The notes beneath the pieces are model-generated. The model saw only the letters and a program-made list of their open reading frames with translations, made no database searches and was not told where the DNA came from. From the sequence record NC_048170.1: 64,000 nt of DNA. One strand, given 5' to 3'. Below are positions 5 through 63,980 of this stretch, in pieces; position 1 is the stretch's first letter, and each line of letters begins with the position of its first letter. A program made the position numbers and the translations under genes.

Positions 5-940
5 TTGCTGCTCGCACAGCTCCCTATGAGATACGACATCTCAGTACAAACTTACTACGACATGATTCTCGATCTTACCCCAGAATTGGGTAATCGTGTC
101 AAGTTGACAACATCAAGATACGCGGGTAAGTTATTCGACGGTGCTTTCTATCCGGGACTGCACGAAGCTATTATCGCAACCGGTGAAAGTCGTCTTATTT
201 CACGTGATGTTCTTGACAACTGGCGTAATTGGTCACCAGTTAGAATCGTGACGCACCCATACGCAAATCTTCGTTACATTCCTCTTCACCAAAAGCAGGT
301 TGAAGAAGGACGAGGTTTTGCGGTCATTATGGTTGATGTGCCTTTGTTAGCGCTACAGTATCGAATGTGGTCTTTGGTCATGGGTCATAACGTCGACGGT
401 AAATGGGTGGTTAAAGAACCGGTTACAAGCTTCCTTGCGAGTTTTCCGTTGGTTAACGCATTATACTCACACAACGATGTTGTTATACGCAATCGTTGTT
501 TGTGGGTATCACCGGCTAAGAATCCACTCAAATCACCAATTTACGTTAACGACCTTGATAACGTATTCAGCCAAGTCGTTCTGTCCGTACAGCATCATTT
601 ATTACGAAGAAGACGAAGCTACACCGATATGCTTAAACAGATACCGAGTTTATACGGGGATCAGTACCAAGCAACCCGAATGGGTTACACCGTCGATCTT
701 CGACAAACACGATGGGCAAGGGATCTGGGTTGTCTGTCATTATGGCAACAACTCGTCACATTGCAAAACGTATCTGAAAGCGTCGGGTTCAGCAGTCAAA
801 TCGATAACGACCTGTACCGTGCTGCTGACCGTAGTCTAAAAGAAGGTAACTGGGAGTCCTCTCCGTTACCTGGCGATTTAAGACGTGAAGTTATCGCACA
901 GGTTGCCGACCTCTTAAAAATTCTTCCCGCCGGTGCATAA
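5..940 (+). CDS. Conserved jumbo-phage protein, probably 5'-truncated by the window edge; sits where phiKZ-like phages have the gene between DNA polymerase and chimallin
   Basis: 311-aa ORF starting at a TTG at the window edge, converging on the DNA polymerase gene at a shared hairpin. Function not recognisable from motifs; placement is by recalled synteny. Confidence 0.65.
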   Translation: MLLAQLPMRYDISVQTYYDMILDLTPELGNRVKLTTSRYAGKLFDGAFYPGLHEAIIATGESRLISRDVLDNWRNWSPVRIVTHPYANLRYIPLHQKQVEEGRGFAVIMVDVPLLALQYRMWSLVMGHNVDGKWVVKEPVTSFLASFPLVNALYSHNDVVIRNRCLWVSPAKNPLKSPIYVNDLDNVFSQVVLSVQHHLLRRRRSYTDMLKQIPSLYGDQYQATRMGYTVDLRQTRWARDLGCLSLWQQLVTLQNVSESVGFSSQIDNDLYRAADRSLKEGNWESSPLPGDLRREVIAQVADLLKILPAGA

Positions 941-1006
941 TCACCCCCCTCTTCCCTTGCATCCTCCCAACCCGTAAGGGAAGGGAGGATGGGGTGGTGG
1001 GTTATG
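936..1006. terminator. Bidirectional hairpin between convergent genes, with TATG on each side
   Basis: ATCCTCCC-AA-CCC-GTAA-GGG-AA-GGGAGGAT at 961-990. TATG at 1003-1006 (+) and 939-936 (-). Confidence 0.75.
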
Positions 1007-3160
1007 TTATTCTGCGGTTTCTTGCTTCGGTAAATAACTTGCTGCAATGTCTTGGGCTAACAATGTATTGTTTTTATTCGAGATGAAAATACCGTAACTT
1101 TCCATTAACGCGTAATACGAACGAACGAGCGTAGAGATCAATCGACGAATATCCATACCTTGAATAAAGATATCAGGAAGCCCGGAGGCTTCGATCACCG
1201 GTAATGGTATCGTTAAGTTGCTTATCGTTTTCTTATCGTTACGTACAATCCAATCACGGAAACGTTGTTGTAACCCTTTATCCTCCCAGGAATCAATCCA
1301 ATCGTTAAGAAGCGTTTTGTTCTTCGTCGCCAACGGCACACGAACCCCAACATAGGGCGGTTCCTGGCAATGGCCGTACGATTGAGCAAACACCTCTTCC
1401 CACATATCGTAAGACTGTTTCGTTACCGCAACATGTGGCTTCACTTTAACACGTGTTAAGAAATCGGGATCACCTCGTTTCATGGACTCAACGATTTCGT
1501 TTTCTAACGAGATAATATCATCAAGAACCAATCGAATGCTGATCTTCTCGTTACGTAACAGCTTATCCATGATACCACACATCATGCGTTCAACACGTTT
1601 GACGATCATTTTTGGTGCTGACGCGTCACGCATAACCGGACCTTTCAATTCCAGCTTCGGTGGGTTGATAGGAACCCCCTCACGCATGGTCATGTAACCG
1701 TAATAGTTTTTACCCATCGAGGTTAACGACAGAATCAAGAACATATATTCGTTCTTCATTTCCATCACGTACATATGCTCTTTCGCTACACCGATATTAC
1801 CAGAACACATCGCCATCAGATGAACCGTAATCTGCGTAACCAGATAGATAAGCGTATTTGCTAAGCGCGTCGAAACTGGATTGATCTCCATATTTCCAAA
1901 TCGCCACTGCACCCACTCCTGGCAGGTAAACACCGTCGAGTCGGTATCAGACAACACACCCACTTCACGGATTGCTGATGGGAAAGCATAAACGCCAGCC
2001 GGTTGGTTCTCGGTACGCCAGAATGCCATAATCAAATCTGCGTAGCTTTGAATACGCTGTAGCATTAATTTTGTCGTCGCCGCAGTAAGACGATAACCAA
2101 GTTCATTTCCTTTTTCTAGCGCTACGTAAATCGCTTCCCCGTTCAAGAACTCCGTGCATTGTGCTGTAATCCAAGCGACCGTGTTGTTATCCATGGAAGC
2201 AATAATGGCTTTAGCCTCTTCCATCGTTTCAACAGGTTCGGATGCCAGCTCACATAACGAGTCAAGAAAATCTCGAACAAATTCAGGATTAAGCTCACGT
2301 AACGAGTACAGGTTATTGCTGTACATGTAGCAGGCACGTTCCAACGGTGTTAAACCGGTAATTAACTCCCGGATAGTCAGTTCTTTCTCTGGGTCGAAAG
2401 TATATCGATGCAAGCATTTCGATACGTTAGCCCAAACCTCTTCCGGCGTAGGGTAATGTAGTTTGTATTTTACCATTACCTGCTCAATGGCTTTGCGATC
2501 GCTGTTACGAACAATACTTACGATGTTTTCAATTGCGATATCACAATCGTAATAATGGAAATTGCCCGCAAGGAAGCGTTCGTTGTTCGCATTGGCTGAA
2601 CCTGAAGCACAGCGACATGTTGTCGTTAAACTTGGATGCGCGATCGGATTATAAAAAGGGTTAAACTTGGACGCCTGGGTTCCTGACAAACTGTTGTTGT
2701 CTAACTTGGTGTTGGTTTGTCGTTTATCGTGTAACTCAGCTTCGTCTTTACGTCCGTGTGCTTGCGCTATCGACATTTGTTTCTTTTGTTTCTTACGCAA
2801 CTTACCGTTTTCAACCGCGAAGTCGCTTAGCACACTGGAACGTGTTTCACGTGGATAACAGTTAGCCCATACCGGCGTGATAATTAAATTATTTTCTTTA
2901 ATATCATTGAAGTATTGGCTGAACTTGATGACTTCTTTTTCACGATTTCCTTCGGTACGCTGTGTTAATACAAGACAGTCGGGATCAACCATCCCGTATT
3001 TTCCACCGGGACGAACCGTATCAAGGACAAACTGCAACGCTTCCTGCTGTGATATCCCACGCATGCGCATTAAGAACAGGGTATAATCCTGTACCGCTTC
3101 TTTGGTCATATCCAACGTACGACCATATCCGTTTTCATCGTAAAAGAACGGATTTTCCAT
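1007..3160 (-). CDS. Family-B DNA polymerase, polymerase-domain subunit (phiKZ gp50-like, split enzyme)
   Basis: 717 aa. Motif B-like KRQTNTKLDNNSLSG, motif C VLSDTDSTVF, and LELKG. No exonuclease motifs or motif A seen. Confidence 0.9.
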   Translation of the reverse strand: MENPFFYDENGYGRTLDMTKEAVQDYTLFLMRMRGISQQEALQFVLDTVRPGGKYGMVDPDCLVLTQRTEGNREKEVIKFSQYFNDIKENNLIITPVWANCYPRETRSSVLSDFAVENGKLRKKQKKQMSIAQAHGRKDEAELHDKRQTNTKLDNNSLSGTQASKFNPFYNPIAHPSLTTTCRCASGSANANNERFLAGNFHYYDCDIAIENIVSIVRNSDRKAIEQVMVKYKLHYPTPEEVWANVSKCLHRYTFDPEKELTIRELITGLTPLERACYMYSNNLYSLRELNPEFVRDFLDSLCELASEPVETMEEAKAIIASMDNNTVAWITAQCTEFLNGEAIYVALEKGNELGYRLTAATTKLMLQRIQSYADLIMAFWRTENQPAGVYAFPSAIREVGVLSDTDSTVFTCQEWVQWRFGNMEINPVSTRLANTLIYLVTQITVHLMAMCSGNIGVAKEHMYVMEMKNEYMFLILSLTSMGKNYYGYMTMREGVPINPPKLELKGPVMRDASAPKMIVKRVERMMCGIMDKLLRNEKISIRLVLDDIISLENEIVESMKRGDPDFLTRVKVKPHVAVTKQSYDMWEEVFAQSYGHCQEPPYVGVRVPLATKNKTLLNDWIDSWEDKGLQQRFRDWIVRNDKKTISNLTIPLPVIEASGLPDIFIQGMDIRRLISTLVRSYYALMESYGIFISNKNNTLLAQDIAASYLPKQETAE

Positions 3161-3220
3161 AAATCCTCCAAAAGTTATTTAGTCTGTCTACATCATCTCG
3201 TATATCTGTTAAAAAAGAAG

Positions 3221-3263
3221 GACGGCATAAAAAAGAACCGATCCAGCCGAAGCCAGATCGGTT
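3221..3263 (-). terminator. UUCG-capped hairpin plus U-tract plus ATGCCGTC
   Basis: Minus strand AACCGATC-TG-GC-TTCG-GC-TG-GATCGGTT (3263-3236), then CTTTTTTTATGCCGTC. Confidence 0.75.
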
Positions 3264-3458
3264 AAAAAGGATAATAACTGACAGAAAGATATCGATGATG
3301 TTCGTGAAACAAGATCTTCTCTCGTGTACAATGATGCTAGATCAGAGGGAGGTTGTAACACGAGAGGTGGTTCGCCAAAGAAGGAATAAAAACACGAACC
3401 TATCTTATTTCACTGATGGCACTAACCACTCAAAATATATAGTACTGTATGTAAAAGT

Positions 3459-3872
3459 TTACTGATTAATCAAGTCGTTAGCAACAATCTTGGTGTAACC
3501 TGCCTGATTAAGAATCTGATTAATTTTCGTTACGTCGGTCGCATCCTCAATAACGATGCTGGGTTTATAGATCAGCGTCTTGGTAACGACGATTGTACTC
3601 TCCTTAATCCAAGGAATCCCTAGAATCACATACTCGCCATCGGCTGTAATGACCTCGACGTAATTGTATTTCGTCGGATCGTTCGGTACACTAGACGGGA
3701 GCCGGGAATAAATCTGTTGGTGAATGGCGTCTACATCACGGCCGTTGCGCACAGCCGTACGATAGTTGTACACGGCGCTAATTTCTACTCCGTTGAAGTT
3801 AACCCCAAGTTCTGGGGCGTATACATCAAAACTCACAACAGAGCCAATCTTTTCTAAATCAGAAGCTGGCAT
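3459..3872 (-). CDS. Hypothetical protein
   Basis: 137-aa ORF with AGGA SD (aaaggatgctattATG); protein-like composition. Confidence 0.75.
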   Translation of the reverse strand: MPASDLEKIGSVVSFDVYAPELGVNFNGVEISAVYNYRTAVRNGRDVDAIHQQIYSRLPSSVPNDPTKYNYVEVITADGEYVILGIPWIKESTIVVTKTLIYKPSIVIEDATDVTKINQILNQAGYTKIVANDLINQ

Positions 3873-3883
3873 AATAGCATCCT

Positions 3884-4405
3884 TTATTTAAAAATGTATT
3901 CGTATCCGAAGGTCGTCGCCGACCAGACCCGGATAGATGATAGTGTTCCGCCACGATAAAACGTTTTTGTGAATTCCATATCCTGGGCAACACGATAATA
4001 AACACGTCCGATAATACGCACGATAAGGTTTCGTGATAACGATCTCTCCTCGCAGTATTCATCGATAAAGTCATCGTCGATATCCGATAAGACAACATCC
4101 GCAATTTCTTGCAGTAGGTTCCTCATCAGCATCTGCCTTCCTTCGGTACCCCACCCAGACAAACAGTAATCGTCTTCTGCCTGACTATAGATGTCGTTAA
4201 CCGCCTGTTCGAGCAGTTGCTCAAGATAGTAGTCATCGCGTTTTATAACGTGGCGACGGCGCTCAGTGGCGTATTTTTCCATCCTGTGTTTCTCTTGTTC
4301 GGCGTATGTATTAACGACGCCACAGTCTTTTCTGGATCGTCCCACAATGCACGACGAAAACTGGATACTACCATAACGGTAGGATAGATTTGTACAACCT
4401 CCCAT
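3884..4405 (-). CDS. Hypothetical acidic helical protein (true start possibly ATG 4282)
   Basis: ORF track 173 aa. The N-terminal 41 codons overlap the upstream gene. Confidence 0.6.
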   Translation of the reverse strand: MGGCTNLSYRYGSIQFSSCIVGRSRKDCGVVNTYAEQEKHRMEKYATERRRHVIKRDDYYLEQLLEQAVNDIYSQAEDDYCLSGWGTEGRQMLMRNLLQEIADVVLSDIDDDFIDEYCEERSLSRNLIVRIIGRVYYRVAQDMEFTKTFYRGGTLSSIRVWSATTFGYEYIFK

Positions 4406-4731
4406 CCGTAACGATGTGCGTTAGTCGTACGTCCGACATTGAACAGACATAGCTGATTTAAGAAACAGAGCTGCATCTTCGTAAACAACACCATGTCTTC
4501 ACGTTTAACGTATCCGAGGATATACGCATTCTCGAACGCCTCGCGTGACAAGACGGGACGATTAAGATACCGCAACGACAGTACCAACAACGTTGTTATG
4601 CGCAACGGATCTTCTGGGTCATTCATGGTGCTCAGCTCTGCTTGTAACCAGTCAGGGATAGTAACCGTCAGACGATAGGTATCTGTTCCACGATCAACCA
4701 CATTCAATGTTGAAAAAGGCAACATATCCAT
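4243..4731 (-). CDS. Hypothetical protein
   Basis: 162 aa; aaggaattcATG start; co-directional cluster. Confidence 0.7.
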   Translation of the reverse strand: MDMLPFSTLNVVDRGTDTYRLTVTIPDWLQAELSTMNDPEDPLRITTLLVLSLRYLNRPVLSREAFENAYILGYVKREDMVLFTKMQLCFLNQLCLFNVGRTTNAHRYGWEVVQIYPTVMVVSSFRRALWDDPEKTVASLIHTPNKRNTGWKNTPLSAVATL

Positions 4732-6845: not shown

Positions 6846-6936
6846 ACTCTTTTCCTAAGTCCCCATTGTTTATACACACGATATCTGGGAATAGTTAAAA
6901 TATACGGCGTAAAACGAAGCAGGAGAGTTTCTGACG

Positions 6937-7269: not shown

Positions 7270-7301
7270 ACGGCATAAAAGCCTGCCCCGAAGGACAGGC
7301 T
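7270..7301 (-). terminator. UUCG hairpin plus TTTTATGCCGT
   Basis: Minus strand GCCTG-T-CC-TTCG-GG-G-CAGGC (7300-7281), then TTTTATGCCGT. Confidence 0.75.
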
Positions 7302-12754: not shown

Positions 12755-12778
12755 CCGTCTCGAGACAACTCGAGACGG
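12755..12778 (-). terminator. Perfect 10-bp hairpin downstream of 12808..13146
   Basis: CCGTCTCGAG-ACAA-CTCGAGACGG; followed on the minus strand by TAAGTTTATAC. Confidence 0.55.
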
Positions 12779-15643: not shown

Positions 15644-15836
15644 CAATGTAACGGTAAAACTTTACTGACGTTGGTTATTATTTGAAGCATAGGGCTTCAC
15701 CCAGGAGTACCATCCCTTTAAGTCGTTTGTCCTCTCCTGGTTAACTGTCGTTCTCTCACAGTGCTCGACAGACCAAAAATGCTCAGGCCTCATAGCCTCC
15801 TCTGGGAATGGAACCCAGAGGAGGACTATGTTTGCC

Positions 15837-16230: not shown

Positions 16231-18462
16231 TTAGAAAAAACCGCCCGGACGGTATTGACCCATCGTCATCCACGCATTACGAGAAATATTCCGTTCATTC
16301 GAAGAGCGGCTTATTTGACGATAAGTATTCGCTCGTTCCTCCCTTGCTTTCGTGATCATCGCATCAATAGAAACAGCCGCTGAATCTTCCCCACGTATTT
16401 TTCCTTTATACGTAAGAAGCTCTGCCTCCAATCGATCCAAGATAAGGCCGTTGGTTTCGGTCTTAAGCAACTCATAGATTTCAGCAACGCGTTGACGAAG
16501 CTTCGCCTGCTGTTGGTTAAGATAAGCTTCATACGGATCGATTTCACCCGTCACAGATGCCGGTAAACGACTCATGACTTTAAGCGGATCGATACCATAA
16601 TGAATCTGTTTCTTAGCGCGCTTGATGAACCACATCGCTAACATCCAGGCGAACGTCATGTCGTCGTGCATTCCATCCTGGTGATCGACACGCCCATCTT
16701 TGATAACCAATCCAAGGATCTCGGAACACAACATCTTATCACGTAATTGCCCGCGGGTTTCTACAATACCTTCCATCAAGATGTCGGAATACAACTCCAT
16801 ACGTTTGCGTGCATCCGTTGTGAAGCCCAAATGCCGTTTACGTTGAGCATACCAACTTTCATCACGCATGCTCAATGGTAATTTCAGGTCTTCGAACATC
16901 GCTGGGTTATCAGCATGTCTGTCCACAATTGTGTTGTATACGCGTTTGAATACGTCGATGCCCGCTTGTCTCAGGAACTCTTCAATTGCGTCTAACAACA
17001 TGATTGCGCTGCTTTTACGTTCAGGAATCAACGTAACGTTCTTAAAACGCATCATGAAGTTGGCCATCCAACGAGCAAAAGAAAGCAAGCTCAGTTTATT
17101 AAAACGTCCTGTCGCAACAACTTCTGCTGTTTCTACATCCACCATCACCAAACCGATAGCGTCACGACCTATTGCATCGCTGGTGTCTAAACCAGCAACC
17201 ACCTTATTGTTCTGCATGTATGTCTCGATTTGACCTCGAGGTATATACCAGTTAATGCAGTAGCCTTCAGGTGAGATCTCGATGTGGTCGATTTCACGTT
17301 GTCCTGCCATGATCATCTCAACCATCTCAGCGGTTAACGGGCTTTCTGCTGAACCGTTGGTCCAGATGTTCATGTAGTCGCGGTCTTTCTGAAGTTTATC
17401 ACCTTCCGTTTCGTTCATGGTTTTTGCTAACCATTCATCACTGAATCCCAACTGAGCATGGTTCCATTGTGCCCCGATCCTGACGGTCGCTTTGCTGAGC
17501 TCGCACGGTACGTTGTTCAATACCGTCTGATGCAGATGCTTTTCGTTACGGCAGTCAAAGAAACTTTCAGAGAACGGCGCGGAACGCATGAAAACTTCAT
17601 AAGCCCATTTGCCTTCGCGTTTATCCAATTCACCTGCTGTTGTCGTATAGATGATACTTGTCAGGTCGCCGTTGCTTAATGCTTCATCGCGTGCCGCACC
17701 CATCGCACCGATACCAGCAGGAACAATAATTTCGATGTATTTCGTAAACGCGGTTTCGTCGCTATGGAATAGCGGGGTTGTTAGACCACGGCCGATGTTT
17801 GTTGCTTGTTTCTTATCCGAACGTGGAATCTTTACCGATAACTTGTTCTTGAAACGTGTGTAGGTTACGTTCTCTTTGTTCGATGAATCCCGACTATCCA
17901 GCGTCCAGAGATACGCAGGTAACAGATCGCGTATACTACGCACGTCTTCTACCGTTTTCGTACGGGCGTCACCGTCTTTTGTTAATTGAATAACCTCGGT
18001 GTTTCGACTACGAACATAGGTTAGATAACAGAACAGTCCTAACATGGTCATGGATTTACCGGTCTGACGTATCTGTATCTGATACCAGTTCGTTCGGGTA
18101 AATATCCCCCAGAGCATCGGAATGTTACCGCGGTTAGCACGGAATGAAATTTTGTTATCACCCGCTTTAGCCGGAACACGCATCACTTCACGGAAGAAGT
18201 ACCATGGATTAAGATAGCATTCCGCACTGATCATCTGAATCTGTTCTGACGTCAAATTCGGTGCGTGGGGATCAACACCAATCAATCTTGGGTTTAATAA
18301 CGCCATGAAAAACGCAGAGTTCCGGACACCGAATTCACGACGATACAAGATCGCTAAATCACGCCAACTTGTGTTTGTTGTTTCCCAGTGTGGAACAGCC
18401 TGAGGAAAATAATCCCAATCTTCCTCAAACAGGATGATTTTCTTCGGATCGACAATCGACAT
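16231..18462 (-). CDS. terL: Terminase large subunit (phiKZ gp25-like)
   Basis: 743 aa. Walker A RQTGKS, Walker B LFHSDETAF, coupling motif YTTT, RNase H-fold nuclease GLDTS ... HDDMTFAW. Confidence 0.93.
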   Translation of the reverse strand: MSIVDPKKIILFEEDWDYFPQAVPHWETTNTSWRDLAILYRREFGVRNSAFFMALLNPRLIGVDPHAPNLTSEQIQMISAECYLNPWYFFREVMRVPAKAGDNKISFRANRGNIPMLWGIFTRTNWYQIQIRQTGKSMTMLGLFCYLTYVRSRNTEVIQLTKDGDARTKTVEDVRSIRDLLPAYLWTLDSRDSSNKENVTYTRFKNKLSVKIPRSDKKQATNIGRGLTTPLFHSDETAFTKYIEIIVPAGIGAMGAARDEALSNGDLTSIIYTTTAGELDKREGKWAYEVFMRSAPFSESFFDCRNEKHLHQTVLNNVPCELSKATVRIGAQWNHAQLGFSDEWLAKTMNETEGDKLQKDRDYMNIWTNGSAESPLTAEMVEMIMAGQREIDHIEISPEGYCINWYIPRGQIETYMQNNKVVAGLDTSDAIGRDAIGLVMVDVETAEVVATGRFNKLSLLSFARWMANFMMRFKNVTLIPERKSSAIMLLDAIEEFLRQAGIDVFKRVYNTIVDRHADNPAMFEDLKLPLSMRDESWYAQRKRHLGFTTDARKRMELYSDILMEGIVETRGQLRDKMLCSEILGLVIKDGRVDHQDGMHDDMTFAWMLAMWFIKRAKKQIHYGIDPLKVMSRLPASVTGEIDPYEAYLNQQQAKLRQRVAEIYELLKTETNGLILDRLEAELLTYKGKIRGEDSAAVSIDAMITKAREERANTYRQISRSSNERNISRNAWMTMGQYRPGGFF

Positions 18463-18512
18463 ATAAACTCCTCCGATGGAGGGTGCCGGGCACCCTCCAT
18501 CGTTGTATTACC

Positions 18513-20252
18513 TTATGCGACTTTACTAATAACGACTGCAGTGATACCAAGATGTAGGTCGACGCCATTCTGTACTTTAATCCAGCGGATATACAGGTTA
18601 GCGTTATCCTGTCCCGTACCACCTGGGACGTTATTGTTCCTATTCCATTGCGAGATTTCGAAACGTTTCTGCACGTTAGGACCAACCATGATTTCAAAGT
18701 GAGTCGGTTCTGGTGCTTTCGATTCCGTCTTCTCAAGATAGAGTGGATGTGTCGGGTAGTAAAGTTGGTTCAACCATTCACCCAGATCTGAGTGTTTGTT
18801 CGTCAAGTCAACATACGCGTTACCAGCAACATCGTAAGTAAACAACGCTTTCGTGTTACGACCGTACACATCCGTTGTCGTCGGTGTTGTTTGCGAGCTG
18901 AACGTTACTGTCCAGTAATCACCGGATGTCGCCGAACCTGCTTGCAGTAACGTCATTCGAATAGTCTGCGTATGACGTACGCGTTTGTAAACAGTAGGAT
19001 CGACTTCATCTAACCAGATGTTGTACGCAAATTCCTGAGGTTGTCCGTATTTCTTCGGATTAAACTCAGGGCTGTTCAGCGCCAATTGTACTTTATCGGT
19101 TACGTTGTAGTATCGTTCACGGTCAACGTTGTACAACCAGAACACCAGCTCGTATCCCACCGCATCAGATACCCATTGTGGATAGCAGAACAGTTTAACA
19201 CTGTATGCCCCTTTCGCTTCTTTAGAAACGACGGTATAAGGTACGCTGATGTGTTTCACTGCGCCAGGTAACGCGTAGGATGTGTCCTCATCATCGTCCA
19301 GGTAGTAGTGTAACGCCAGCGGGTGTTTGCTGTTGATAACCTGGGACGTGAAGACGTTAAGGCCATCCAACACAACCTTGTTGCCAGTAACCGGCCAATG
19401 TTTAATGGATCCGTCGCTGTAGGTGACTTCAGCTTGAAGGTCAACGGAATCCAGGTTGACGTTGATCGGCAACTCAAGCAGTTTGGTATCGCTGCTGTTC
19501 AGCCACGTTGATTTCAGTCGTACCCCGTCTTCCAGAATATATTTAATACCCTGGTCTGGTGTGCGTACATAGTCGGTGATACGAACGATCATACGTTTCA
19601 TGGATAGCGGCTGTGGACCATCGCCATAACCTACCACCATCACCTGCTCAAAATCTTCGACGGGCTTAATGCAGTAACCTTCGCGGGGTGCCCAGATAGC
19701 TTTATTCGTTCCGTCTTTGTAAGCGATAAGCTGACACGGAATAAAGTCACTGATCTTATTCCCACTGTTGTCATACATCGCACTGATGATTTCGCCTTTG
19801 GCGCTGATATCAGAACCACGGAACACGGCGATACGTCGAATATCCGAACCATGCAGATGGAAACGGCGATCGATATTCATCGTAGCAGGGATCGTGTTCG
19901 TATTAATCAATACGCGCCATGTATCGTACGACCATGTCGGATCAATACCCTCAAAGGTTGTCGTCCCATCGTCCTGACCATCGAACGGAGCAGAAAGCTG
20001 ACCGATAAGTTTAAGGGTACTTAGTTTAGTGCGATCGTCTACGGCGATAACACGATATACTGCGTTGGTATCCCAGTCTTCAACTTTATCGTCCACGTTG
20101 GGAACGTAAAGTTTCCAGTCTTCTTCAACGCCATTATAGATCTCTTTATACGCATAGGTGGTATAGCGTCTGTCGAGATCCTGAATAGCGAGTTTATCCG
20201 GATGCTGTTGTGCATAAAGCACCGGATTGGTAATCTCTCTTCCCATTATCAC
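18513..20252 (-). CDS. Virion structural protein (phiKZ gp26-like, tail/baseplate block)
   Basis: 579 aa, beta-rich; position between terL and sheath matches recalled phiKZ order and size. Confidence 0.7.
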   Translation of the reverse strand: MIMGREITNPVLYAQQHPDKLAIQDLDRRYTTYAYKEIYNGVEEDWKLYVPNVDDKVEDWDTNAVYRVIAVDDRTKLSTLKLIGQLSAPFDGQDDGTTTFEGIDPTWSYDTWRVLINTNTIPATMNIDRRFHLHGSDIRRIAVFRGSDISAKGEIISAMYDNSGNKISDFIPCQLIAYKDGTNKAIWAPREGYCIKPVEDFEQVMVVGYGDGPQPLSMKRMIVRITDYVRTPDQGIKYILEDGVRLKSTWLNSSDTKLLELPINVNLDSVDLQAEVTYSDGSIKHWPVTGNKVVLDGLNVFTSQVINSKHPLALHYYLDDDEDTSYALPGAVKHISVPYTVVSKEAKGAYSVKLFCYPQWVSDAVGYELVFWLYNVDRERYYNVTDKVQLALNSPEFNPKKYGQPQEFAYNIWLDEVDPTVYKRVRHTQTIRMTLLQAGSATSGDYWTVTFSSQTTPTTTDVYGRNTKALFTYDVAGNAYVDLTNKHSDLGEWLNQLYYPTHPLYLEKTESKAPEPTHFEIMVGPNVQKRFEISQWNRNNNVPGGTGQDNANLYIRWIKVQNGVDLHLGITAVVISKVA

Positions 20253-26893: not shown

Positions 26894-26896
26894 CGT

Positions 26897-26964
26897 AAAA
26901 AAAAAAAAGCATATTAACCTCCCTTCCTTCCCTAGCCGTCAAGGCCGGGGAAGGAAGGTTTATG
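26897..26964. terminator. Bidirectional hairpin with A12 tract and flanking TATG
   Basis: CCTTCCTTCCC-TA-GCC-GTCAA-GGC-CG-GGGAAGGAAGG at 26922-26958. TATG at 26961-64 (+) and 26913-10 (-). A12 at 26897-26908. Confidence 0.75.
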
Positions 26965-27958: not shown

Positions 27959-27996
27959 CATAACCACCACCGTAGCCCTGTATGGGGCTACGGTGG
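27959..27996 (-). terminator. 12-bp hairpin plus GTTATGTC
   Basis: CCACCGTAGCCC/GGGCTACGGTGG at 27967-27996; minus-strand TATG at 27962-59. Confidence 0.7.
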
Positions 27997-28026
27997 GGTC
28001 ATACAGAGAGACGTGTTAAGTTACAA

Positions 28027-28506
28027 TCAGTCTTTCAGCAGCTCAGCCGCATACGCGCTGATGTTGTCGCGAATATGCTTAACCTGAGTTGTCGGGAAAG
28101 ATTTCTTATACGCGGTAGTCAGGCGTCCGTAAACCTGTTTCTTCTCGTTAGAGCCGAAACCAACTTCAGCGCTGCGTTGAACCGTTGCAGACACAACGTC
28201 TTTGCCCAGCGGCAGGGTTACAGAAACAACGTCAACCTGTTTGTTATCCGCCATGAACTGCGCGCCAACGCGACCTACCGCCAGACCATGAGCCAGACCG
28301 ATATCGGTGGTCAGTTTCTGTGCTTTTTCCAGGATTTCTTTTTCTTCCGGCGTTACCAGAGTACCCAGGAAATCACTACCTAACTTCTGGCTACCAGATT
28401 CGTCCAGTTTAATACCAGCGGCGATTTTATCAGAAAGAGCCTGAACTTCCGGACGTACGTTAGAAGTGGTTTCAGTCGCTACGGTGGTTTCTACAGCTTC
28501 AGACAT
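28027..28506 (-). CDS. Probable abundant small protein, possibly a head protein
   Basis: 159 aa; GGAG SD; own downstream hairpin; N-terminal VATE resembles an A-x-E protease site. Confidence 0.7.
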   Translation of the reverse strand: MSEAVETTVATETTSNVRPEVQALSDKIAAGIKLDESGSQKLGSDFLGTLVTPEEKEILEKAQKLTTDIGLAHGLAVGRVGAQFMADNKQVDVVSVTLPLGKDVVSATVQRSAEVGFGSNEKKQVYGRLTTAYKKSFPTTQVKHIRDNISAYAAELLKD

Positions 28507-28629
28507 GTTAATACTCCAATTAGTTTTTTCGATCGATCAAAAGGATAAAATCAGAAGATTCTTTCTTCATAGGGAAAACACAAGTCGGTTAAGGTTTACT
28601 TCTTAAACTCCTTGCGTTCTATCAGTTAG

Positions 28630-28652: not shown

Positions 28653-29442
28653 CCAATAATGCCGCAACGTTCCGTGCGAAACGAATTACCTTGTAATTGC
28701 GGGTCTGTTTGATATCTTCTTCCCCATCACTGTCACCTTCAGACGGATCTTCCCACATGAAGTCTTGTTCGTCCGCTTTCTGTAAATAGCGGTATAACTG
28801 CACCATGCTGCGTGCGGTCGGAGAGATAGCGCGAAGCTCATCCAATTCTTCATCAGTCAACAGAACATGCGGTGAACGCAGTGGTTCCATTGTTGTATTA
28901 CACAACAGACGAATCAGCAGATCGACGCACGGAATAACCGAACCTGGTGAGGCGATTTCTGGGTGTAACGTATAACCCCAATATACGGTGTTAAAATACG
29001 TCAAAACAGCAGGTAGTGACGGATGTTCCATCGCACGGCCAATTTGTTGTCTTACGATAGATGCACGATCGTTCAATACATCGAAAGTAATCTGTTGCGG
29101 TTCCATAACCGCAAGTGAAATACCGTACGCGTCAGCCACACCCAGGATTTCATGAAGGGTCGAACGTTCTTCTTCGGTGGATATTGTCCCGATCGCCTTA
29201 CGCCCCGCAAGGTCAATCAGCATCGGTGAAACAGCTTCTTTAACCGCATTAAAAGAAGCCTGGTAAGCGTGTTTATGAATATACAGTGTCCACGCTAATG
29301 CGCGCTCAGCCGCATGAAGCAGATCGACATAAGACAGTTCTTGATGGCATGGGCCATACACACTCACAGCAAGCTTGGTGGCTTTCTCAGAGGCTTGCAT
29401 AATAACATCTGGTGATTTAGGCATATCGCGTTCTTCTTGCAT
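28642..29442 (-). CDS. Hypothetical protein
   Basis: 266 aa; helical, acidic patch near the C-terminus. Confidence 0.7.
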   Translation of the reverse strand: MQEERDMPKSPDVIMQASEKATKLAVSVYGPCHQELSYVDLLHAAERALAWTLYIHKHAYQASFNAVKEAVSPMLIDLAGRKAIGTISTEEERSTLHEILGVADAYGISLAVMEPQQITFDVLNDRASIVRQQIGRAMEHPSLPAVLTYFNTVYWGYTLHPEIASPGSVIPCVDLLIRLLCNTTMEPLRSPHVLLTDEELDELRAISPTARSMVQLYRYLQKADEQDFMWEDPSEGDSDGEEDIKQTRNYKVIRFARNVAALLEKS

Positions 29443-29530: not shown

Positions 29531-29573
29531 GACGGCATAAAAAGTACCTCCTTACCCATGTGGGTAAGGAGGT
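29531..29573 (-). terminator. Perfect 12-bp hairpin plus TTTTTATGCCGTC
   Basis: ACCTCCTTACCC-ATGT-GGGTAAGGAGGT at 29546-29573, downstream of the protease/RNAP operon. Confidence 0.8.
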
Positions 29574-38446: not shown

Positions 38447-38930
38447 CCTTGTCTTCGCCTCAGGTCGCTACGCTGAGACCGCCTGCATGGATACGTACAT
38501 CACAGGCTGCTTGCACTTTCATGCAAGAGGAGACTATATCAAACCGTCAGCTTCACTTTCTCGATCATATCGAGAATGCGGCGCTGAAGTATTCTTCAGC
38601 AGCACCTGTTACGGTAACCTACACTTCGAAGACGCTTGTCCTCTACAGGGTGGTAAATCCCTTAGTCGTTGAACCTGCGTTGTTTCACATTCTTACAACC
38701 AAGAATGCCGTATTGCTACGCAATAACCAGGCTGCTGATTGCCCATTGTCTCGCACCTTAGCACCGCTTACGCGGCTTTTCTTTCAGCCTAAGCCTCTTA
38801 CGGAGGTAGTGCATCTCAACTGTTGTTTCTGCCTTTCGGCACCTCATGGGTCGTTGAGCTTTAGGGGTTCCCAGCAATTCGTAGGTTTTTCAAGCACTCC
38901 CTTTCAGGAATACCGGACCTTATAGAAAAG

Positions 38931-40403
38931 CTATTTATTCAAGTATCTGAAATCCCACTTATCCTTACGTCTATTATCGCACTTGATGTCAGGATGTCTA
39001 ACACGGTGTTGAATCGTAGTCGCTGGTAATTGACTCACATTCACAGCCGATTTCGCGCCAAGAACAATTGTTTTTGTGTTGTCCGGACGAGTAACTTCTA
39101 CCGCTCGATGATGTTTACGTAACACATCACGCCAATACTCACGCCGTTCCGGTTCCGCGTATTCGAGCATATAACCGTTGGTATCGACCAGACCGTAACT
39201 CTCGTTTAAACGAGAGGTGGCGGCTGGTCTACTAATACCAATCGCTTTAGCCGCGTCAACCACGGTTTTATACGGGGTCTCATTACCGTCTCTATCTACA
39301 ACCACAATAAAATCTGGACGCGAATCGAGCAGCTGCTGTCTTCGTTCAAGGGCTTGTTGATGAAGCACCTTATTAACATGTTCGAACCCGTAACCTTCTG
39401 GACCGTGCCACCCTGGATTGTTATTCGCTCGATAAAGTATCGTCGCAGATTTCACTCCCGTCTGACGTGACGCCTCGTTCGCACTATGGACAACCGTGGT
39501 AGTGCCATCAGGGTGATATATCCGTATCTGGTTCATTATACCAGAACCAACGAAATTACCATCAGCTGATTTAATGTCCGGCCAGGGTTGTGGATCATCT
39601 TTGAATTTAACCACCCAACGGTTGTTAAACAATTTGACTTTCCGAGCATGTTTACCTAATGTCGTGTCTGTAACACCGGCTACAGCAGAGGCTTGCGCGA
39701 TACTAGGATATTCCGTGACCACATCTTCTTCAGTATCCCAAAGGAGAACCGGTTTGTTATCATCACGTAGTCCGGTCTCAACCGCATGTAGAATATTTCT
39801 AAGGCGGGTTGCCCATTCTAGATTGTCTAACGCGTAATTCCACTTATCGCCATCAAGATGGTTAACGTCCATCCTATCGACATCAGCCGGATAATCTTTC
39901 CACGCTAAGAGCAGACAGCGATGAAGCGATCTTCTCTGGGATTTAAATCGGCAATCATGCTGCATACTAACGAAAACATAGCTATCGTCAACACACCAGT
40001 GAGGACACTGACGGCCAGTAATACGGTTGATGATTCTACCTTTCCGGTTGGCCAAATAACGAGTGTGTCCGGGAATGACACGATAACCTGGGTACTTAGC
40101 GATTTCGTAAGCAGGCTCGAACCGATAGGATAAATTATCAACATCCCAGTTAGATTCGTCACCATCAACAAACATCGCTTTGACGTATTTCTGTGTTTCA
40201 ATATCAACCAGGATGTTTTTGTGTGCGATACAAATCAATGCTGGGATATTGAATTCGCGACCGGCTATGATAACCGTGTCGCCATTTCTCGGTACCTCGA
40301 CGTGGGTATCGCGATACCGTAAGTTTCCATAGCCGTCTATTTCAATCCAGCTTAAAAACGGAATGGGTATAAACTCTTTTTCAGATACTCGCCATTTAAA
40401 CAT
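38931..40403 (-). CDS. Intron-encoded HNH homing endonuclease with NUMOD4-like and NUMOD1/HTH-like repeats
   Basis: 490 aa; DVNHLDGDKWNYALDNLEWATRLRNILH; four C-terminal S-x-x-E/D-A-type HTH-like repeats. Confidence 0.9.
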   Translation of the reverse strand: MFKWRVSEKEFIPIPFLSWIEIDGYGNLRYRDTHVEVPRNGDTVIIAGREFNIPALICIAHKNILVDIETQKYVKAMFVDGDESNWDVDNLSYRFEPAYEIAKYPGYRVIPGHTRYLANRKGRIINRITGRQCPHWCVDDSYVFVSMQHDCRFKSQRRSLHRCLLLAWKDYPADVDRMDVNHLDGDKWNYALDNLEWATRLRNILHAVETGLRDDNKPVLLWDTEEDVVTEYPSIAQASAVAGVTDTTLGKHARKVKLFNNRWVVKFKDDPQPWPDIKSADGNFVGSGIMNQIRIYHPDGTTTVVHSANEASRQTGVKSATILYRANNNPGWHGPEGYGFEHVNKVLHQQALERRQQLLDSRPDFIVVVDRDGNETPYKTVVDAAKAIGISRPAATSRLNESYGLVDTNGYMLEYAEPERREYWRDVLRKHHRAVEVTRPDNTKTIVLGAKSAVNVSQLPATTIQHRVRHPDIKCDNRRKDKWDFRYLNK

Positions 40404-51068: not shown

Positions 51069-51114
51069 CATAAACCCCCTCTCCCAACCCGTGAGGGAAG
51101 GGAGAGGGAATATG
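51069..51114. terminator. Bidirectional hairpin with flanking TATG
   Basis: CCCTCTCCC-AA-CCC-GTGA-GGG-AA-GGGAGAGGG at 51077-51108; TATG at 51111-14 (+) and 51072-69 (-). Confidence 0.78.
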
Positions 51115-52210: not shown

Positions 52211-52248
52211 TACGGCATAAAGCCTACCCACACAATGGTGGGTAGGCT
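52211..52248 (-). terminator. Hairpin plus TTATGCCGTA
   Basis: AGCCTACCCA(C)/(G)TGGGTAGGCT at 52221-52248; minus-strand TATG at 52219-16. Confidence 0.75.
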
Positions 52249-55447: not shown

Positions 55448-55449
55448 AA

Positions 55450-56849: not shown

Positions 56850-56861
56850 TTATTTAGCCTT

Positions 56862-58352: not shown

Positions 58353-58450
58353 TGGGTAAAGACTCCTTCGATTCTTCGACTAATTCTTAGTGTTCAGAGA
58401 ATAACTATTTTTAGTTAAGACTGACAACCGCTATTTCCACGAGGACAATC

Positions 58451-59293: not shown

Positions 59294-59345
59294 CATAATA
59301 ACCCACCCTACTACCCCGTTAAGGGCGGTAGGGTGGGATAAGGTT
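59294..59345. terminator. Bidirectional hairpin
   Basis: CCCACCCTAC-TA-CCC-CGTTAA-GGG-CG-GTAGGGTGGG at 59302-59337; TATG on the minus side only (59297-94). Confidence 0.75.
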
Positions 59346-59776
59346 TATTTGCCGTATAGTTGTACCACTCGTTGTGTCGTAGGAACGCAGACTCTTACCA
59401 GAAGCTTCTTAATCTCCTGACGAATCGTTGCTTTATCATCATAATAAAGCCATGGCGGAACGCGTTGCATTATGCACTGCACGGCTTCATCGTAGTTCGT
59501 CGTCTCATTAAGTAACGTCTCACTATCCAGATCTTTCCATGCAGTAATACCAAGTCGCGCAGCAAACATCAACGCTGAAACCGACTCAGCTATCTCCAAT
59601 CGCTCATTCATATCCGCAAGACCTTTTAGCATGATGTAATTATCATCATGCTGATGTAAGGTGCCATACAAACTTCCGAAGAGAAGTATACGTTTAGCTT
59701 TTGCGGTTAAGAGGAACGACAGGAGAGCGTGTTTCAACGGTTGTTTCTCACGTTCTACCTGTTCGACCATCACCAT
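59345..59776 (-). CDS. Hypothetical protein
   Basis: 143-aa ORF directly downstream of RNase H. Confidence 0.7.
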   Translation of the reverse strand: MVMVEQVEREKQPLKHALLSFLLTAKAKRILLFGSLYGTLHQHDDNYIMLKGLADMNERLEIAESVSALMFAARLGITAWKDLDSETLLNETTNYDEAVQCIMQRVPPWLYYDDKATIRQEIKKLLVRVCVPTTQRVVQLYGK

Positions 59777-59779
59777 TGA

Positions 59780-61318
59780 TTACTCCAACACATAACGTGG
59801 GTTACTGTATATGTTAGCCCATATACCAACGTCGTCTCCTGATTCGATAATCACAGCGAAACGAAACGCAACATCAGATTCACGATAAGTTACCGCGTAC
59901 GCTTTCGTTTCTGGCGATGCTAAATAGCTCAAGTTCAGACGTTGAGGTAGGTCTAACCCCAAGGACATGGTACAAGACGTAACGCCCTGCTTATCGGGGG
60001 TCAGTCTGTAATTCACGTCCACCTTCAAGCTTTTCGTAACCTGCGTAATCGCACTATGCACTTTGGTAACCGTTTTGCCTTTCTTATCCTTTTCTGTTTC
60101 GAAAAGAACGTCGGTAATTTCGGTTACAACCAGGCGCGGTGTGGATTCGCGGTTAGCATCCAGCCATTCATCCAGCAACGTCTTTAAGAAGTTCAAGGAA
60201 TCAATCGCGCGCCAAGCAAGGTTAGGTGGATTGCACGCTTCCATTAGAATGGCTGTGTTGGATCCACCTAGCGGAAGATGCACGCTCTTACCGAGGCCCG
60301 TCGGACGCATCGTAAGATCGCACTCGCCCTCAAGAATATCGCGATGATACTGACGATGATGAAGGTTATCCGTGTATGCGATATACACTGACTCCGTTGT
60401 CCCATGCTCTAATACCCGAGATGCATGCGTACGCATAATCTCAACAGCATCATCCGGCTTGCTTAAATAGATAACACTGTACGCACTATCGCTAATCCTT
60501 TTCCCTAACTCAAGACGTCCCTTGTTGTCTTTATCAGTGTTACCACCGAAATAGATGTAGCGGCCATCTTTCGCACGCTCTTGCTGCTGGTTGGTGGTAA
60601 AGTAGCAGCGTGAGAACGTAAAGAACGGGCTTATTTCCGGTTCGGGGCTCCAATACCCCTTAGCCGGAAGTTCGCGGCGTATTTGGGTTCTTACAGCCCA
60701 GTCCTGGTTTTGTGACAGATATGTTCCACGCGTTGCCAGCATATCCGCACGTTCGTTACCAACATTGCCCTCATGTCCAGGAACGTAGCGCAGCGAAATA
60801 TCGATAGCGTCGCGCTTCGCATCCCTTATCGCGCTATCGAGTTTCCGCCACCGTTCCGCATTCATTAACGGTTTATTGTCGGATTTAACCCAGTTGTTCT
60901 CTCGCCAGTTAGCAAGATGGTTGGTGGCACCTACAACAACATATTGGCTGTCCGACAACAGCTGGATCCGTTTTGCCCCCTTTGCTTTTCCAAGTTCAAT
61001 CGCACGTATTGCAGCATCCAACTCAGCCTGATTGTTCGTTACGTTGAAACCCAAAGCCTCTAACTCATCCACGTATTCCTTGGGTTCGACCAGCACAGCG
61101 TCTTTAGGAAAGTCGAGTTTAGGGTCAACATAACCGTATTGCGTTGGTTTGGGCTTCCCACTTTTTGAGGGTTCCAAGGTGCCTTTTATTTCTTTCACCA
61201 TATCGTAGGTGTAGCCGTGCACGCCGTAGCCACCATACCCACTCGATGTTGGACGGGATCCTCCATCACAGTAGAAAACGGCACCGAGCTCAGTATTTCC
61301 TGCCATTGTAAACCTCAT
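59780..61318 (-). CDS. rnh: Ribonuclease HI with a long C-terminal extension (phiKZ gp155-like)
   Basis: FYCDGGS, TNNQAEL, LLSDSQYV, VPGHEGNVGNERADMLA give the full D-E-D-H-D set. Alternative start ATG 61306. Confidence 0.9.
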   Translation of the reverse strand: MRFTMAGNTELGAVFYCDGGSRPTSSGYGGYGVHGYTYDMVKEIKGTLEPSKSGKPKPTQYGYVDPKLDFPKDAVLVEPKEYVDELEALGFNVTNNQAELDAAIRAIELGKAKGAKRIQLLSDSQYVVVGATNHLANWRENNWVKSDNKPLMNAERWRKLDSAIRDAKRDAIDISLRYVPGHEGNVGNERADMLATRGTYLSQNQDWAVRTQIRRELPAKGYWSPEPEISPFFTFSRCYFTTNQQQERAKDGRYIYFGGNTDKDNKGRLELGKRISDSAYSVIYLSKPDDAVEIMRTHASRVLEHGTTESVYIAYTDNLHHRQYHRDILEGECDLTMRPTGLGKSVHLPLGGSNTAILMEACNPPNLAWRAIDSLNFLKTLLDEWLDANRESTPRLVVTEITDVLFETEKDKKGKTVTKVHSAITQVTKSLKVDVNYRLTPDKQGVTSCTMSLGLDLPQRLNLSYLASPETKAYAVTYRESDVAFRFAVIIESGDDVGIWANIYSNPRYVLE

Positions 61319-61356
61319 TAATCATTGTCCGTATGATAGCCCAAAGTTGTACGGTA

Positions 61357-61908
61357 TTACCGATTACCGTCGGTTGACGTTGGTTGATCGCGATCGACTT
61401 TCATTGACCGCAGTTTTCCGCCGTTAATTACACATTGATTGCGCTGTTTGGCGGAGGTCAGACTATTACAGACGTAATAGGTATCGATAAAACGTTCAAC
61501 GCGTTCTTGAAACTCCCTCTCGTCAACTTTCTCTTTTTCAAAAGTTCGTAACGCCCGATCAACCTCACCCTGGAGAATCCGGTTCTGTTCAACCATACTG
61601 TCGATTAAACGGCCTCGTACTTCGTTCGATGTGTAAAGTTGACGAATCAGTTCTCGGTTGGTGTCTCGCGCATAACGCAATGTTGCATTTTCCTGACGTA
61701 AACTACTCACGTCAGCCATCAAGGTAATGATTTTTTCGCCAGCGAATAACGTCACGATACCCAATACGATGAAAAAGCCCGTAATCAAGAATATCGAGGA
61801 CTGTCGAGCTCCATCTCGACGATAGCGTGTGGGCGGTCGCTTACTTCGCCGAAACAACTCGCGAAGAAAAGGGAAAAGCCAGGGCAACGCCTTGAGTGTA
61901 GTAAACAT
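61357..61908 (-). CDS. Membrane-anchored coiled-coil protein
   Basis: AAGGA SD before ATG 61908; one TM segment (IFLITGFFIVLGIVTLFA), heptad-rich region, two Cys near the C-terminus. Confidence 0.65.
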   Translation of the reverse strand: MFTTLKALPWLFPFLRELFRRSKRPPTRYRRDGARQSSIFLITGFFIVLGIVTLFAGEKIITLMADVSSLRQENATLRYARDTNRELIRQLYTSNEVRGRLIDSMVEQNRILQGEVDRALRTFEKEKVDEREFQERVERFIDTYYVCNSLTSAKQRNQCVINGGKLRSMKVDRDQPTSTDGNR

Positions 61909-61962
61909 GCGTGTGTCCTTGATAGTATGAAATTTCCAATACAACTTAACCGAGGACGTCGA

Positions 61963-63303
61963 ATGATTAGTATTTTTGGTTTTTATACGTACAAAGGGTA
62001 CGCTAATAACCACCCAAAAACCACGGCGAAATTCGGTGAGTTCAGTCAGCACAGTGCTACGTTCAGTCGCGAAATCGGCATCTATACCAACACGGCGTAC
62101 GCACGTACGACCTTATTAGTGTTGAATGCCGAAAACGAAGCTGGTGAAGCACAAACGCTGAATGACGACACCGCAGGCCGCATTCTTCAGGTTGGTCAAT
62201 GGTTGCTGGAAAAAGCCGCATCGGGCGAAATCCAGGAAGACCGAGACCAAGTTATCGATTACCTAAAAGACGACTTCACAACGTATCTGGATTCTATCGA
62301 CATCCCAACACCCACCACCGATGGCACAGTCTATCTACCAGCGTGGATCAGTTTCAAGATAACGGCCACCGGCGATGTTGTCAAGATTTGGTTGTCTGAT
62401 AGCGTATTCCAAAGTCAATATCCAAAATACGAATATGAAGTCGTTCCCCCTGTTCCTAAGGATCAGTTAGATACCTTCTTCGAAGATCTGGCAACATTGA
62501 AGAAACTGGTTGACAGTCGAAGCAGCGAGAAACTGACCGAAGAAATCAACGAGGTGCGCGACCAATTCCCAGACACACAATTGTGGACGAAAACCTATAA
62601 AGCGTACGATTACACCGACGATTCGAAATACATTAATACCGATTGGACGGTGATTATCTACGGTGCAGCAGGTAACAACATTGATAATATCAAGGAGTTC
62701 CTGCAAAACTGGATTCTTAGCAATAGCACGCACGGACGTCCAGACTGGGAAATCGTTCTGCCGGATCTTTTTATTCCGACGGAACACATCTTCATCCCGA
62801 TCTGGAACCGCCACAGTGCTCCAGAAATGACCAATCAGGCACGTATTTATAGTCCTATCTTCGATGATTCGTTGATGGATACCTACCTGAAAAACTTTGC
62901 TGATGGTTACGGCGAAACCGCCGAAGTCCGTAAGTCGCTTCAAGCGGTGCCGACGTTGTGGCGCTCGATCGGTTTCTTAAGTGTCGGTAACTCACGTAAC
63001 CGAGACGGTAAACTTAAGTTCTACGATCGTTGGCCACAATACGCGCTCATCAGCACAACCAGCATCGACATTAACCGTATCGACGATGCGACACGTGAAT
63101 TCATCACGTTCACTTACGAAATGCTGAAACTGGCAGAATCGCTCACCGAAGACGACCCGGTACCGTTGGGTTATAGTCGTGTTACGCGTGGTAGCAATAG
63201 CTTCTTAGCGAAAAGCCACAACGATGTTCAGTATCTCTTCTTAACAAAAGAAGCGTTCCTGAAGAAAATGCCGGATGAAGCCGACACGCCTGTTGGAGGT
63301 TGA
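61963..63303 (+). CDS. Probable virion structural protein
   Basis: GAGGA SD before ATG 61963; 446 aa. Confidence 0.7.
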   Translation: MISIFGFYTYKGYANNHPKTTAKFGEFSQHSATFSREIGIYTNTAYARTTLLVLNAENEAGEAQTLNDDTAGRILQVGQWLLEKAASGEIQEDRDQVIDYLKDDFTTYLDSIDIPTPTTDGTVYLPAWISFKITATGDVVKIWLSDSVFQSQYPKYEYEVVPPVPKDQLDTFFEDLATLKKLVDSRSSEKLTEEINEVRDQFPDTQLWTKTYKAYDYTDDSKYINTDWTVIIYGAAGNNIDNIKEFLQNWILSNSTHGRPDWEIVLPDLFIPTEHIFIPIWNRHSAPEMTNQARIYSPIFDDSLMDTYLKNFADGYGETAEVRKSLQAVPTLWRSIGFLSVGNSRNRDGKLKFYDRWPQYALISTTSIDINRIDDATREFITFTYEMLKLAESLTEDDPVPLGYSRVTRGSNSFLAKSHNDVQYLFLTKEAFLKKMPDEADTPVGG

Positions 63304-63305
63304 TT

Positions 63306-63932
63306 ATGGCTGTAACACGCATGACGCCAAGTCCCGGTGCGGTCGGGGTATTCACAGTATCAGCGCCGTTTTCCGTTGGTACGTCAACGCTATATACCGT
63401 TACAGCGTTACGCCGATTCAGCGAAGTCATCGGTAGTGGAATCGATCTATTTACGGAACTGTACGAACCGTTATCAATAGACAAATCCACTTTCGAAGCG
63501 CATCTCGAAGCGAATGCTTATCTCGTCACGTTGCAACCGGATTATGGTGCGCCCGTACTGGTACCCGATACGTATATCACGTCGTACCCAAAGAACGATT
63601 CCTTGCGGTATCGTCGCATTATTCTGGGTATCGATTTCGGGCCTCTTCCTCCCGGTCTTGACCTTTCGTATTTAACAACGATATTGAAAGGTAAGGCTAG
63701 TGATATTCTTGGTGTCGAACCTGAAGTTAAAACGATGGAAATCACTCTCGATGATACCGTTACTCAGGAACAACATCAGATAAACGAAGCCCGTCGTCAG
63801 GCTGCGATAAAAGAACGAGATACCATTTACGCACGCTGTGAAACGCAAGAGAAGCAGATAACGGCTTTACTTGCAACCCAAAAGCAACTTATCAAATTGC
63901 TTCAAGACGCCGGTATCAATCCGACACCTTAA
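63306..63932 (+). CDS. Probable virion structural protein
   Basis: GGAGG SD before ATG 63306; C-terminal coiled coil. Confidence 0.7.
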   Translation: MAVTRMTPSPGAVGVFTVSAPFSVGTSTLYTVTALRRFSEVIGSGIDLFTELYEPLSIDKSTFEAHLEANAYLVTLQPDYGAPVLVPDTYITSYPKNDSLRYRRIILGIDFGPLPPGLDLSYLTTILKGKASDILGVEPEVKTMEITLDDTVTQEQHQINEARRQAAIKERDTIYARCETQEKQITALLATQKQLIKLLQDAGINPTP

Positions 63933-63980
63933 CATATTCCCTCCTCCTTCCCTGATGGGTTGGAGGAGGGTTATGCCGTC
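63933..63980. terminator. Hairpin with flanking TATG
   Basis: CCCTCCTCC-TT-CCC-TGAT-GGG-TT-GGAGGAGGG at 63939-63970; TTATGCCGTC at 63971-80 (+); TATG at 63936-33 (-). Confidence 0.75.

Follow-up and report, generated by a model that had tools for sequence, protein, structure and literature searches.

Why do hairpins between the genes of a nucleus-forming jumbo phage carry TATG, a word known from phage promoters, at the base of their stems? The question is raised by a 64,000-nucleotide stretch of sequence record NC_048170.1 (the window), which corresponds to bases 173308-237307 of the genome of Escherichia phage vB_EcoM_Goslar (237,307 bp), a jumbo phage that forms a nucleus and whose virion and non-virion RNA polymerases are phiKZ-like. 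An initial annotation of the window had described ten GC-rich hairpins flanked by TATG and had proposed that they are either stop or 3'-processing signals for the phage RNA polymerase or sites of reinitiation, which would produce antisense RNA between convergent genes. Because TATG is the core of the phiKZ late promoter, the restart or antisense-promoter reading had to be tested. We conclude, with a probability of about 0.82, that the hairpin plus TATG elements of Goslar terminate transcription intrinsically and belong to the type known from phiKZ (Chimalliviridae). Such an element is not new, having already been described in phiKZ and 201phi2-1 (PMC10914365, PMC11512511); for Goslar, as far as we found, its description has gone no further than the generic annotation of four window hairpins as putative terminators in RefSeq.

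In phiKZ, 133 termination regions were mapped by long-read 3'-end sequencing (Putzeys et al. 2024, PMC10914365). The motif common to most of the predicted intrinsic terminators, BCCYCCCCHWWDGGGRRGGBYTTATKYYGT, was found at 61 sites and described as 'a distinct stem-loop followed by a TTAT region'; bidirectional terminators lie between convergent genes (PMC10914365). Motif A of 201phi2-1, with 59 terminators, closely resembles the phiKZ motif (PMC11512511). Eight 201phi2-1 terminators covering the motif classes were placed in a reporter terminator trap in uninfected cells, and several of them are reported to have worked (PMC11512511). The Goslar elements resemble the terminators of both phages in having a C/T-rich 5' arm, a G/A-rich 3' arm, and TTAT(G/T)YYGT about 2 nucleotides (nt) later, in being placed after genes, and in being two-faced at convergent pairs. 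They differ in that their stems, at 7-20 pairs and often interrupted by a 2x2 internal loop, are longer and less uniform, their spacer ranges from 0 to 8 nt, and in their box the K of the consensus is preferably G and the first Y preferably C (TATGC). The phiKZ terminators are known from mapped RNA 3' ends, whereas those of Goslar are predicted from sequence and contig depth. The phiKZ tail TTATKYYGT occurs in 18 copies in Goslar noncoding DNA, at least 14 of which stand directly behind a strong hairpin. Within the 100-150 kb part of the phiKZ genome we found a hairpin plus TTATGTTGT behind the major head gene, and convergent pairs there had the form CATA-hairpin-TATG; Erwinia phage Ea35-70 has hairpin plus TATGCYG, with 16 TATG versus 3 CATA after hairpins. 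Bases 1-50000 of Salmonella phage SPN3US showed no TATG excess after hairpins (5 TATG versus 6 CATA), and its terminators in this stretch are of the U-tract type. Thus, the TATG box is not universal among related jumbo phages.

To count the element, hairpins were detected by windowed folding of both strands, and genes were called with a codon-usage model of open reading frames (ORFs) that agrees with the RefSeq annotation inside the window; counts refer to the whole Goslar genome unless otherwise stated. The main test set comprised 68 intergenic hairpin loci with a core energy of -12 kcal/mol or lower, giving 134 3' flanks. Because the 'core stem' rule excluded the main hairpin family, whose stems contain G-U pairs as well as a 2x2 internal loop, the statistics from the 68 loci are conservative; with a more permissive hairpin set the contrasts were unchanged, though diluted by hairpins within ORF starts. 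TATG ranked first among all 256 tetramers in these flanks. It was present in 42 of the 134, compared to 13.7 expected from noncoding composition and 15.2 ± 3.4 (maximum 27) in 1000 dinucleotide-preserving shuffles, while the reverse word CATA was present in only 3 of the same flanks (binomial p = 9e-10). An enrichment over shuffled background, which the initial annotation had named as one check of its proposal, is therefore present.

For the anatomy of the element we defined hairpin-adjacent TATG as noncoding TATG that starts 0-12 nt past a GC-closed hairpin with an energy of -12 kcal/mol or lower. Counted per strand, there were 64 such sites among 208 noncoding TATG in the genome. The gap between stem and TATG had a mode of 2 nt and was 1-4 nt in 50/64 sites, and the flanks gave the logo T-TATG-C-Y-G-T. 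Stems were 7-20 pairs long (median 12), with a 5' arm that was 85% pyrimidine and a 3' arm that was 85% purine, and at 55/64 sites this composition reached at least 70%. The extended word TATGCYG was present at 22/64 hairpin-adjacent sites but at only 5/144 hairpin-free ones, for which 3.1 were expected. We also observed that TATG occurs in coding DNA genome-wide at 2.5 per kb per strand, compared to about 4.4 expected from base composition; since TATA is depleted similarly there, this deficit looks like a general avoidance of TA rather than avoidance of a spurious promoter or terminator word.

The box follows arriving transcription, as the initial annotation had described: it was present in 31/69 flanks at which a gene arrives and in 10/65 at which none does (p = 3e-4). 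Convergent pairs were its commonest context (22/36 flanks in the wider hairpin set), and at the 27 same-direction sites it stood on one side only. The one-way hairpins were more stable as sense RNA in 20 cases versus 4 (Wilcoxon p = 9e-4), a test that carries a mild selection bias, the hairpins having been picked on the sense strand, and 16/27 of them have G-U pairs on that strand. This greater stability of the sense RNA points to a role at the RNA level in the direction of transcription. The hairpins of convergent pairs were stronger (mean -25 kcal/mol) and equally stable on both strands.

We propose that the nascent RNA folds into a stable hairpin and that the box (T)TATGCYGT, about 2 nt later, takes the place of a long U tract. 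The element would act in the direction of arriving transcription. Between convergent genes the element is a near-perfect palindrome with the box on both strands (CATA-hairpin-TATG), and one hairpin would thus stop both polymerases. As in phiKZ, the RNA 3' ends of Goslar would fall at the box; UUAU, a short U/A-rich stretch, would form a weak RNA-DNA hybrid, and the conserved letters TATG and CYGT may be read by the phage polymerase or by a factor as a pause or release signal. Hairpin-dependent termination is supported by the published mapping in relatives together with the anatomy described here, whereas the reading of the box by the polymerase is what we infer. As in a bacterial intrinsic terminator, a stable GC-rich RNA hairpin stands directly before a U/A-rich stretch; unlike in a bacterial terminator, a conserved non-U word replaces the U tract, in keeping with the initial remark that many of these hairpins lack a U7 tract. 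At least 6 T in the 8 nt after the stem were found in 1/31 box-bearing flanks (mean 3.6 T).

The window holds 12 such elements, listed here with hairpin names that mark their approximate positions:

954-994, both strands: predicted two-faced terminator hairpin (hairpin 961) between gp245 (+) and the DNA polymerase gene gp244 (-); TATG at 1003-1006 (+) and 939-936 (-); belongs to a hairpin family found in at least 13 copies.
3222-3261, - strand: predicted one-way terminator (hairpin 3236) between gp243 and gp244, both -; hairpin 3238-3261, then TTATGCCGT at 3230-3222 with the first base of TATG at 3229; RefSeq putative terminator.
7270-7300, - strand: predicted one-way terminator; hairpin 7281-7300, then TTATGCCGT at 7278-7270 with the first base of TATG at 7277; RefSeq-annotated terminator, its end 13 nt before the gp236 start codon (7257).
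15791-15830, both strands: predicted two-faced terminator of the form CATAG-stem...stem-CTATG between gp224 (+) and gp223 (-).
18460-18517: element with hairpin 18475-18501 between gp221 and the terminase gene gp222, both -; TATG at 18463-18460 (-), overlapping the terminase start codon, and at 18514-18517 (+).
26910-26964, both strands: predicted two-faced terminator between gp217 (+) and gp216 (-); hairpin 26922-26958, TATG at 26961-26964 (+) and 26913-26910 (-).
27959-27999, - strand: predicted one-way terminator after gp214 (hairpin 27967); hairpin 27963-27999, then TATG at 27962-27959.
29532-29573, - strand: predicted one-way terminator after the head protease gene gp212; hairpin 29546-29573, then TTATGCCGT at 29540-29532, with the first base of TATG at 29539 and its G at 29536.
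51069-51114, both strands: predicted two-faced terminator between gp203 (+) and gp202 (-); hairpin 51077-51108, TATG at 51111-51114 (+) and 51072-51069 (-).
52212-52248, - strand: predicted one-way terminator between gp201 and gp202, both -; hairpin 52221-52248, then TTATGCCGT at 52220-52212 with the first base of TATG at 52219; differs at 1 position from the 3' half of the phiKZ consensus.
59294-59337: element with hairpin 59302-59337 between gp192 (+) and gp191 (-); TATG on the - side only (59297-59294), the + side reading the degenerate TTTATTTGCCGT; RefSeq-annotated terminator.
63933-63979: element with hairpin 63939-63970 after gp187 (+), at the end of the record; TTATGCCGT at 63971-63979 (+, TATG from 63972) and TATG at 63936-63933 (-).

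Folding recovered all ten hairpins of the initial annotation at their places, with the same number of 14 flanking TATG copies on recount; exactly five copies read TTATGCCGT, as had been described, and the missing TATG on the + side of 59302 was likewise seen. Two sites had been overlooked, the convergent pair at 15791-15830 and the hairpin at 18475-18501. One hairpin family (CCCTCCTCC-AACCC-GTAA-GGG-AAGG-AGGAGGG and variants) occurs at 13 or more loci. Its near-identical copies (at least 13, e.g., window 954-994, 51077-51108, and 63939-63970) share a 2x2 A.A (or U.U) internal loop and have, on one strand, a GNRA-type tetraloop (GTAA or GTGA), which suggests spread by duplication or gene conversion, or else strong convergent selection. 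The 26922 hairpin was found again at genome 11188 and 84367. Runs of A or T, 11-17 nt long, lie 10-15 nt outside several two-faced terminators, beyond TATG (window 26895-26908 and 63985-64000; genome 100-116 and around 146590). At the end of the record, the last hairpin and TTATGCCGT element (window 63925-64000) are partly repeated by the first 40 bases, and IMG/VR classes the Goslar record as having direct terminal repeats. Given this repeat, the 63939 junction continues across the record ends into the hairpin at genome 57-99 and a - strand gene.

RNA depth showed coarse drops at two of these sites. The phage RNA came from three libraries (X1, X2, and X3) of one sample, as assembled contigs only; a run of raw reads, X24, contained zero phage reads. 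In the - direction across the 27967 hairpin, contig depth fell from 68,352 to 288 in X2, from 77,475 to 597 in X3, and from 8601 to 540 in X1, which is more than 100-fold in X2 and X3 and about 16-fold in X1, with no recovery after the box. At the 29546 hairpin, depth in X3 fell 16-fold, from 5825 to 357, was minimal from the 29536 box to about 29400 (some 120 nt), and then climbed in gp213. Relative to gp214, late structural genes were 100 to 200 times weaker in X2 than in X3, while the drop at 27967 was the same; we take this to suggest that the element works at both stages.

The gene before the 27967 hairpin, gp214 (a 159-amino-acid hypothetical protein on the - strand, window 28000-28600), stood out for its own abundance: in each of the three runs its contig depth was 100 to 500 times that of its neighbors, with values up to about 127,000. 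High depth stops near 28014 on one side and in the 28500s on the other, and a hairpin-free TATG with its G at 28568 is a candidate start. Another hairpin-free TATG (- strand, G at 29422) lies within the annotated gp213 ORF (start 29442) and coincides with a 20- to 60-fold jump in RNA depth, the contig break at 29392 being only about one k-mer overlap distant. The start codon or the promoter of gp213 may be misplaced. We rejected the contig ends at 26908 and 26963 as transcript ends; they are assembly breaks, the same hairpin being present at genome 11188.

Several points weigh against the interpretation of these elements as terminators. The RNA evidence consists of the depth of assembled contigs, which resolves neither strands nor transcript ends, and repeated hairpin sequence accounts for some of the contig breaks at hairpins. 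For 14 of the 64 hairpin-adjacent TATG, no annotated gene arrives on that strand, and gene models beyond the window are our own ORF calls. Strong intergenic hairpins at 12755, 16193, 33880, and 48879 of the window carry no box. Finally, the 18-nt 3' half-consensus GGGRRGGBYTTATKYYGT gave 5 matches in the window with up to 3 mismatches, compared to 2.4 expected, which is not above chance. Four of the five are real sites (7270, 51065, 52212, and 63962), and the literal half-consensus is too rigid for Goslar because the spacer varies.

The alternative that survives best is that the element combines a terminator with a promoter, such that the box is also a working start site for the non-virion RNA polymerase (nvRNAP) and gives rise to antisense RNA at convergent pairs. 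The box shares with the phiKZ late promoter the same four letters in the same orientation to transcription, and in phiKZ TATG, with its G as +1, is necessary for initiation by nvRNAP (PMC4666361). The 27 same-direction boxes lie 1-360 nt ahead of the next ORF call, and at 7277, where the box ends 13 nt before gp236, there is no room for another promoter. In addition, the full TATGCYG was present at 15/27 same-direction sites compared to 4/23 convergent ones (p = 0.008). This last difference has a simpler explanation in the coding constraint of the opposing gene: the tail is probably weaker at convergent sites because the opposing stop codon, 4-20 nt after TATG, constrains it. More generally, the box did not track a downstream gene, being no more frequent in arriving flanks with a same-strand gene next (21/51) than in those with an opposed gene next (10/18). 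A plain late promoter does not fit 37 of the 64 hairpin-adjacent TATG, since 23 face the end of an opposing gene and the 14 already mentioned lack an arriving gene (11 of these also face an opposing gene).

The phiKZ late promoter, moreover, needs no hairpin and has no conserved flanks, whereas hairpin-adjacent TATG in Goslar carry CYGT. The validated promoter P119L (PMC4666361, PMC12809450) has its TATG in a divergent spacer with no GC hairpin, and in Goslar itself the hairpin-free TATG that face genes have flat flanks and are not enriched in TATGCYG. In the RNA data, depth was lowest just past the 29536 box, which argues weakly against a strong start there, and did not recover past the one at 27967, while cappable-seq in phiKZ filed such elements as termination sites (PMC10914365). 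We therefore consider a start site at the box improbable, with some probability left for a restart at same-direction junctions. The initial interpretation stands in its terminator half, which is supported by the match to the published phiKZ and 201phi2-1 motifs and to that extent is not new; its restart and antisense half is not supported, the box being commonest at convergent pairs and the CYGT tail being tied to the hairpin.

Termination must also be weighed against RNA processing or 3'-end protection, in which transcripts would end at a stable hairpin after cleavage or trimming, with the box serving as a site for a nuclease or an RNA-binding protein. Steps of RNA abundance at hairpins would look identical in that case; fragment ends in X2 and X3 accumulate at 28014, which in the - strand RNA lies 15 nt ahead of the 27967 hairpin; and nucleus-forming phages must export their mRNA and encode RNA-binding proteins. 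The published enhanced crosslinking and immunoprecipitation data for one of these, ChmC, concern PhiPA3, not Goslar. We judge processing very unlikely, because with a gap of about 2 nt the box lies 3-10 nt past the stem, just as in intrinsic termination, because several of the eight 201phi2-1 terminators are reported to work in uninfected cells (PMC11512511), and because no processing factor is known for the motif.

That the box is chance or a by-product (AT-rich filler, an extension of the stem by pairing of CATA with TATG, or a start codon served by a GGAGG-like 3' arm) has a negligible probability: CATA and TATG do pair and are added to the stem by folding programs at two-faced sites, 3' arms are Shine-Dalgarno-like, and the TATG at 18463-18460 truly is the terminase start codon, but the observed count was reached by no shuffle, TATG outnumbers CATA 42 to 3, and at the 27 same-direction sites TATG stands on one side only and so is no stem extension. 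The shuffle and CATA counts thus refute it, except at single sites such as 18463. A related candidate, that the ATG of the box opens small ORFs, was rejected because these are no longer than at hairpin-free TATG (median 16 versus 18 codons).

A search of Rfam returned no family that matches the hairpins. Elsewhere in the window it gave a group I intron (RF00028, 67.7 bits) at 38510-38938 on the - strand, between the virion RNA polymerase beta gene pieces gp207 and gp206, which RefSeq already has as a noncoding RNA.

If the elements are terminators, they raise the question of why the four letters of the promoter core recur in a stop signal, which the literature that we found does not address; nor did we find a paper testing pausing or termination by phiKZ-type polymerases. 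At phiKZ start sites, the non-template TATG sits clamped beneath the lobe of the beta-like subunit GP123, and the sigma-like subunit is described as integral to the enzyme. We assume that this subunit stays on during elongation. It is conceivable, although we would not call it likely, that the terminator box is read by the same pocket as promoters: TATG 2 nt past the hairpin would induce a promoter-like pause, during which the hairpin pries apart the U/A-rich hybrid. In a weaker form of the idea, release may be followed by immediate restart at same-direction junctions. The Goslar homologue of GP123 is encoded at genome 39828-41627 on the - strand (E = 6e-43, 28% identity), and 7 of 14 named pocket residues are identical (S144, F151, K158, K190, H331, S334, and Q466), with the aromatic swaps H185 to Y and Y406 to F. 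By analogy only, the class II signal of T7 RNA polymerase and sigma70-dependent pausing at -10-like words in the non-template strand also involve a short conserved word, readable by the polymerase, downstream of or in place of a structure. If the idea of a shared pocket is true, a single site on the protein would determine where jumbo-phage transcripts begin and where they end, with no need for a U tract.

Together, these elements provide a usable map of transcript ends for Goslar, which is now a main Escherichia coli model for nucleus-forming phages, and such a map helps in reading RNA-seq data, designing knock-downs, and defining operons. The box is common to Pseudomonas phage phiKZ, Erwinia phage Ea35-70, and the E. 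coli phage Goslar. That it is shared although the beta-like polymerase subunits are only about 28% identical suggests that the signal is old and under selection.

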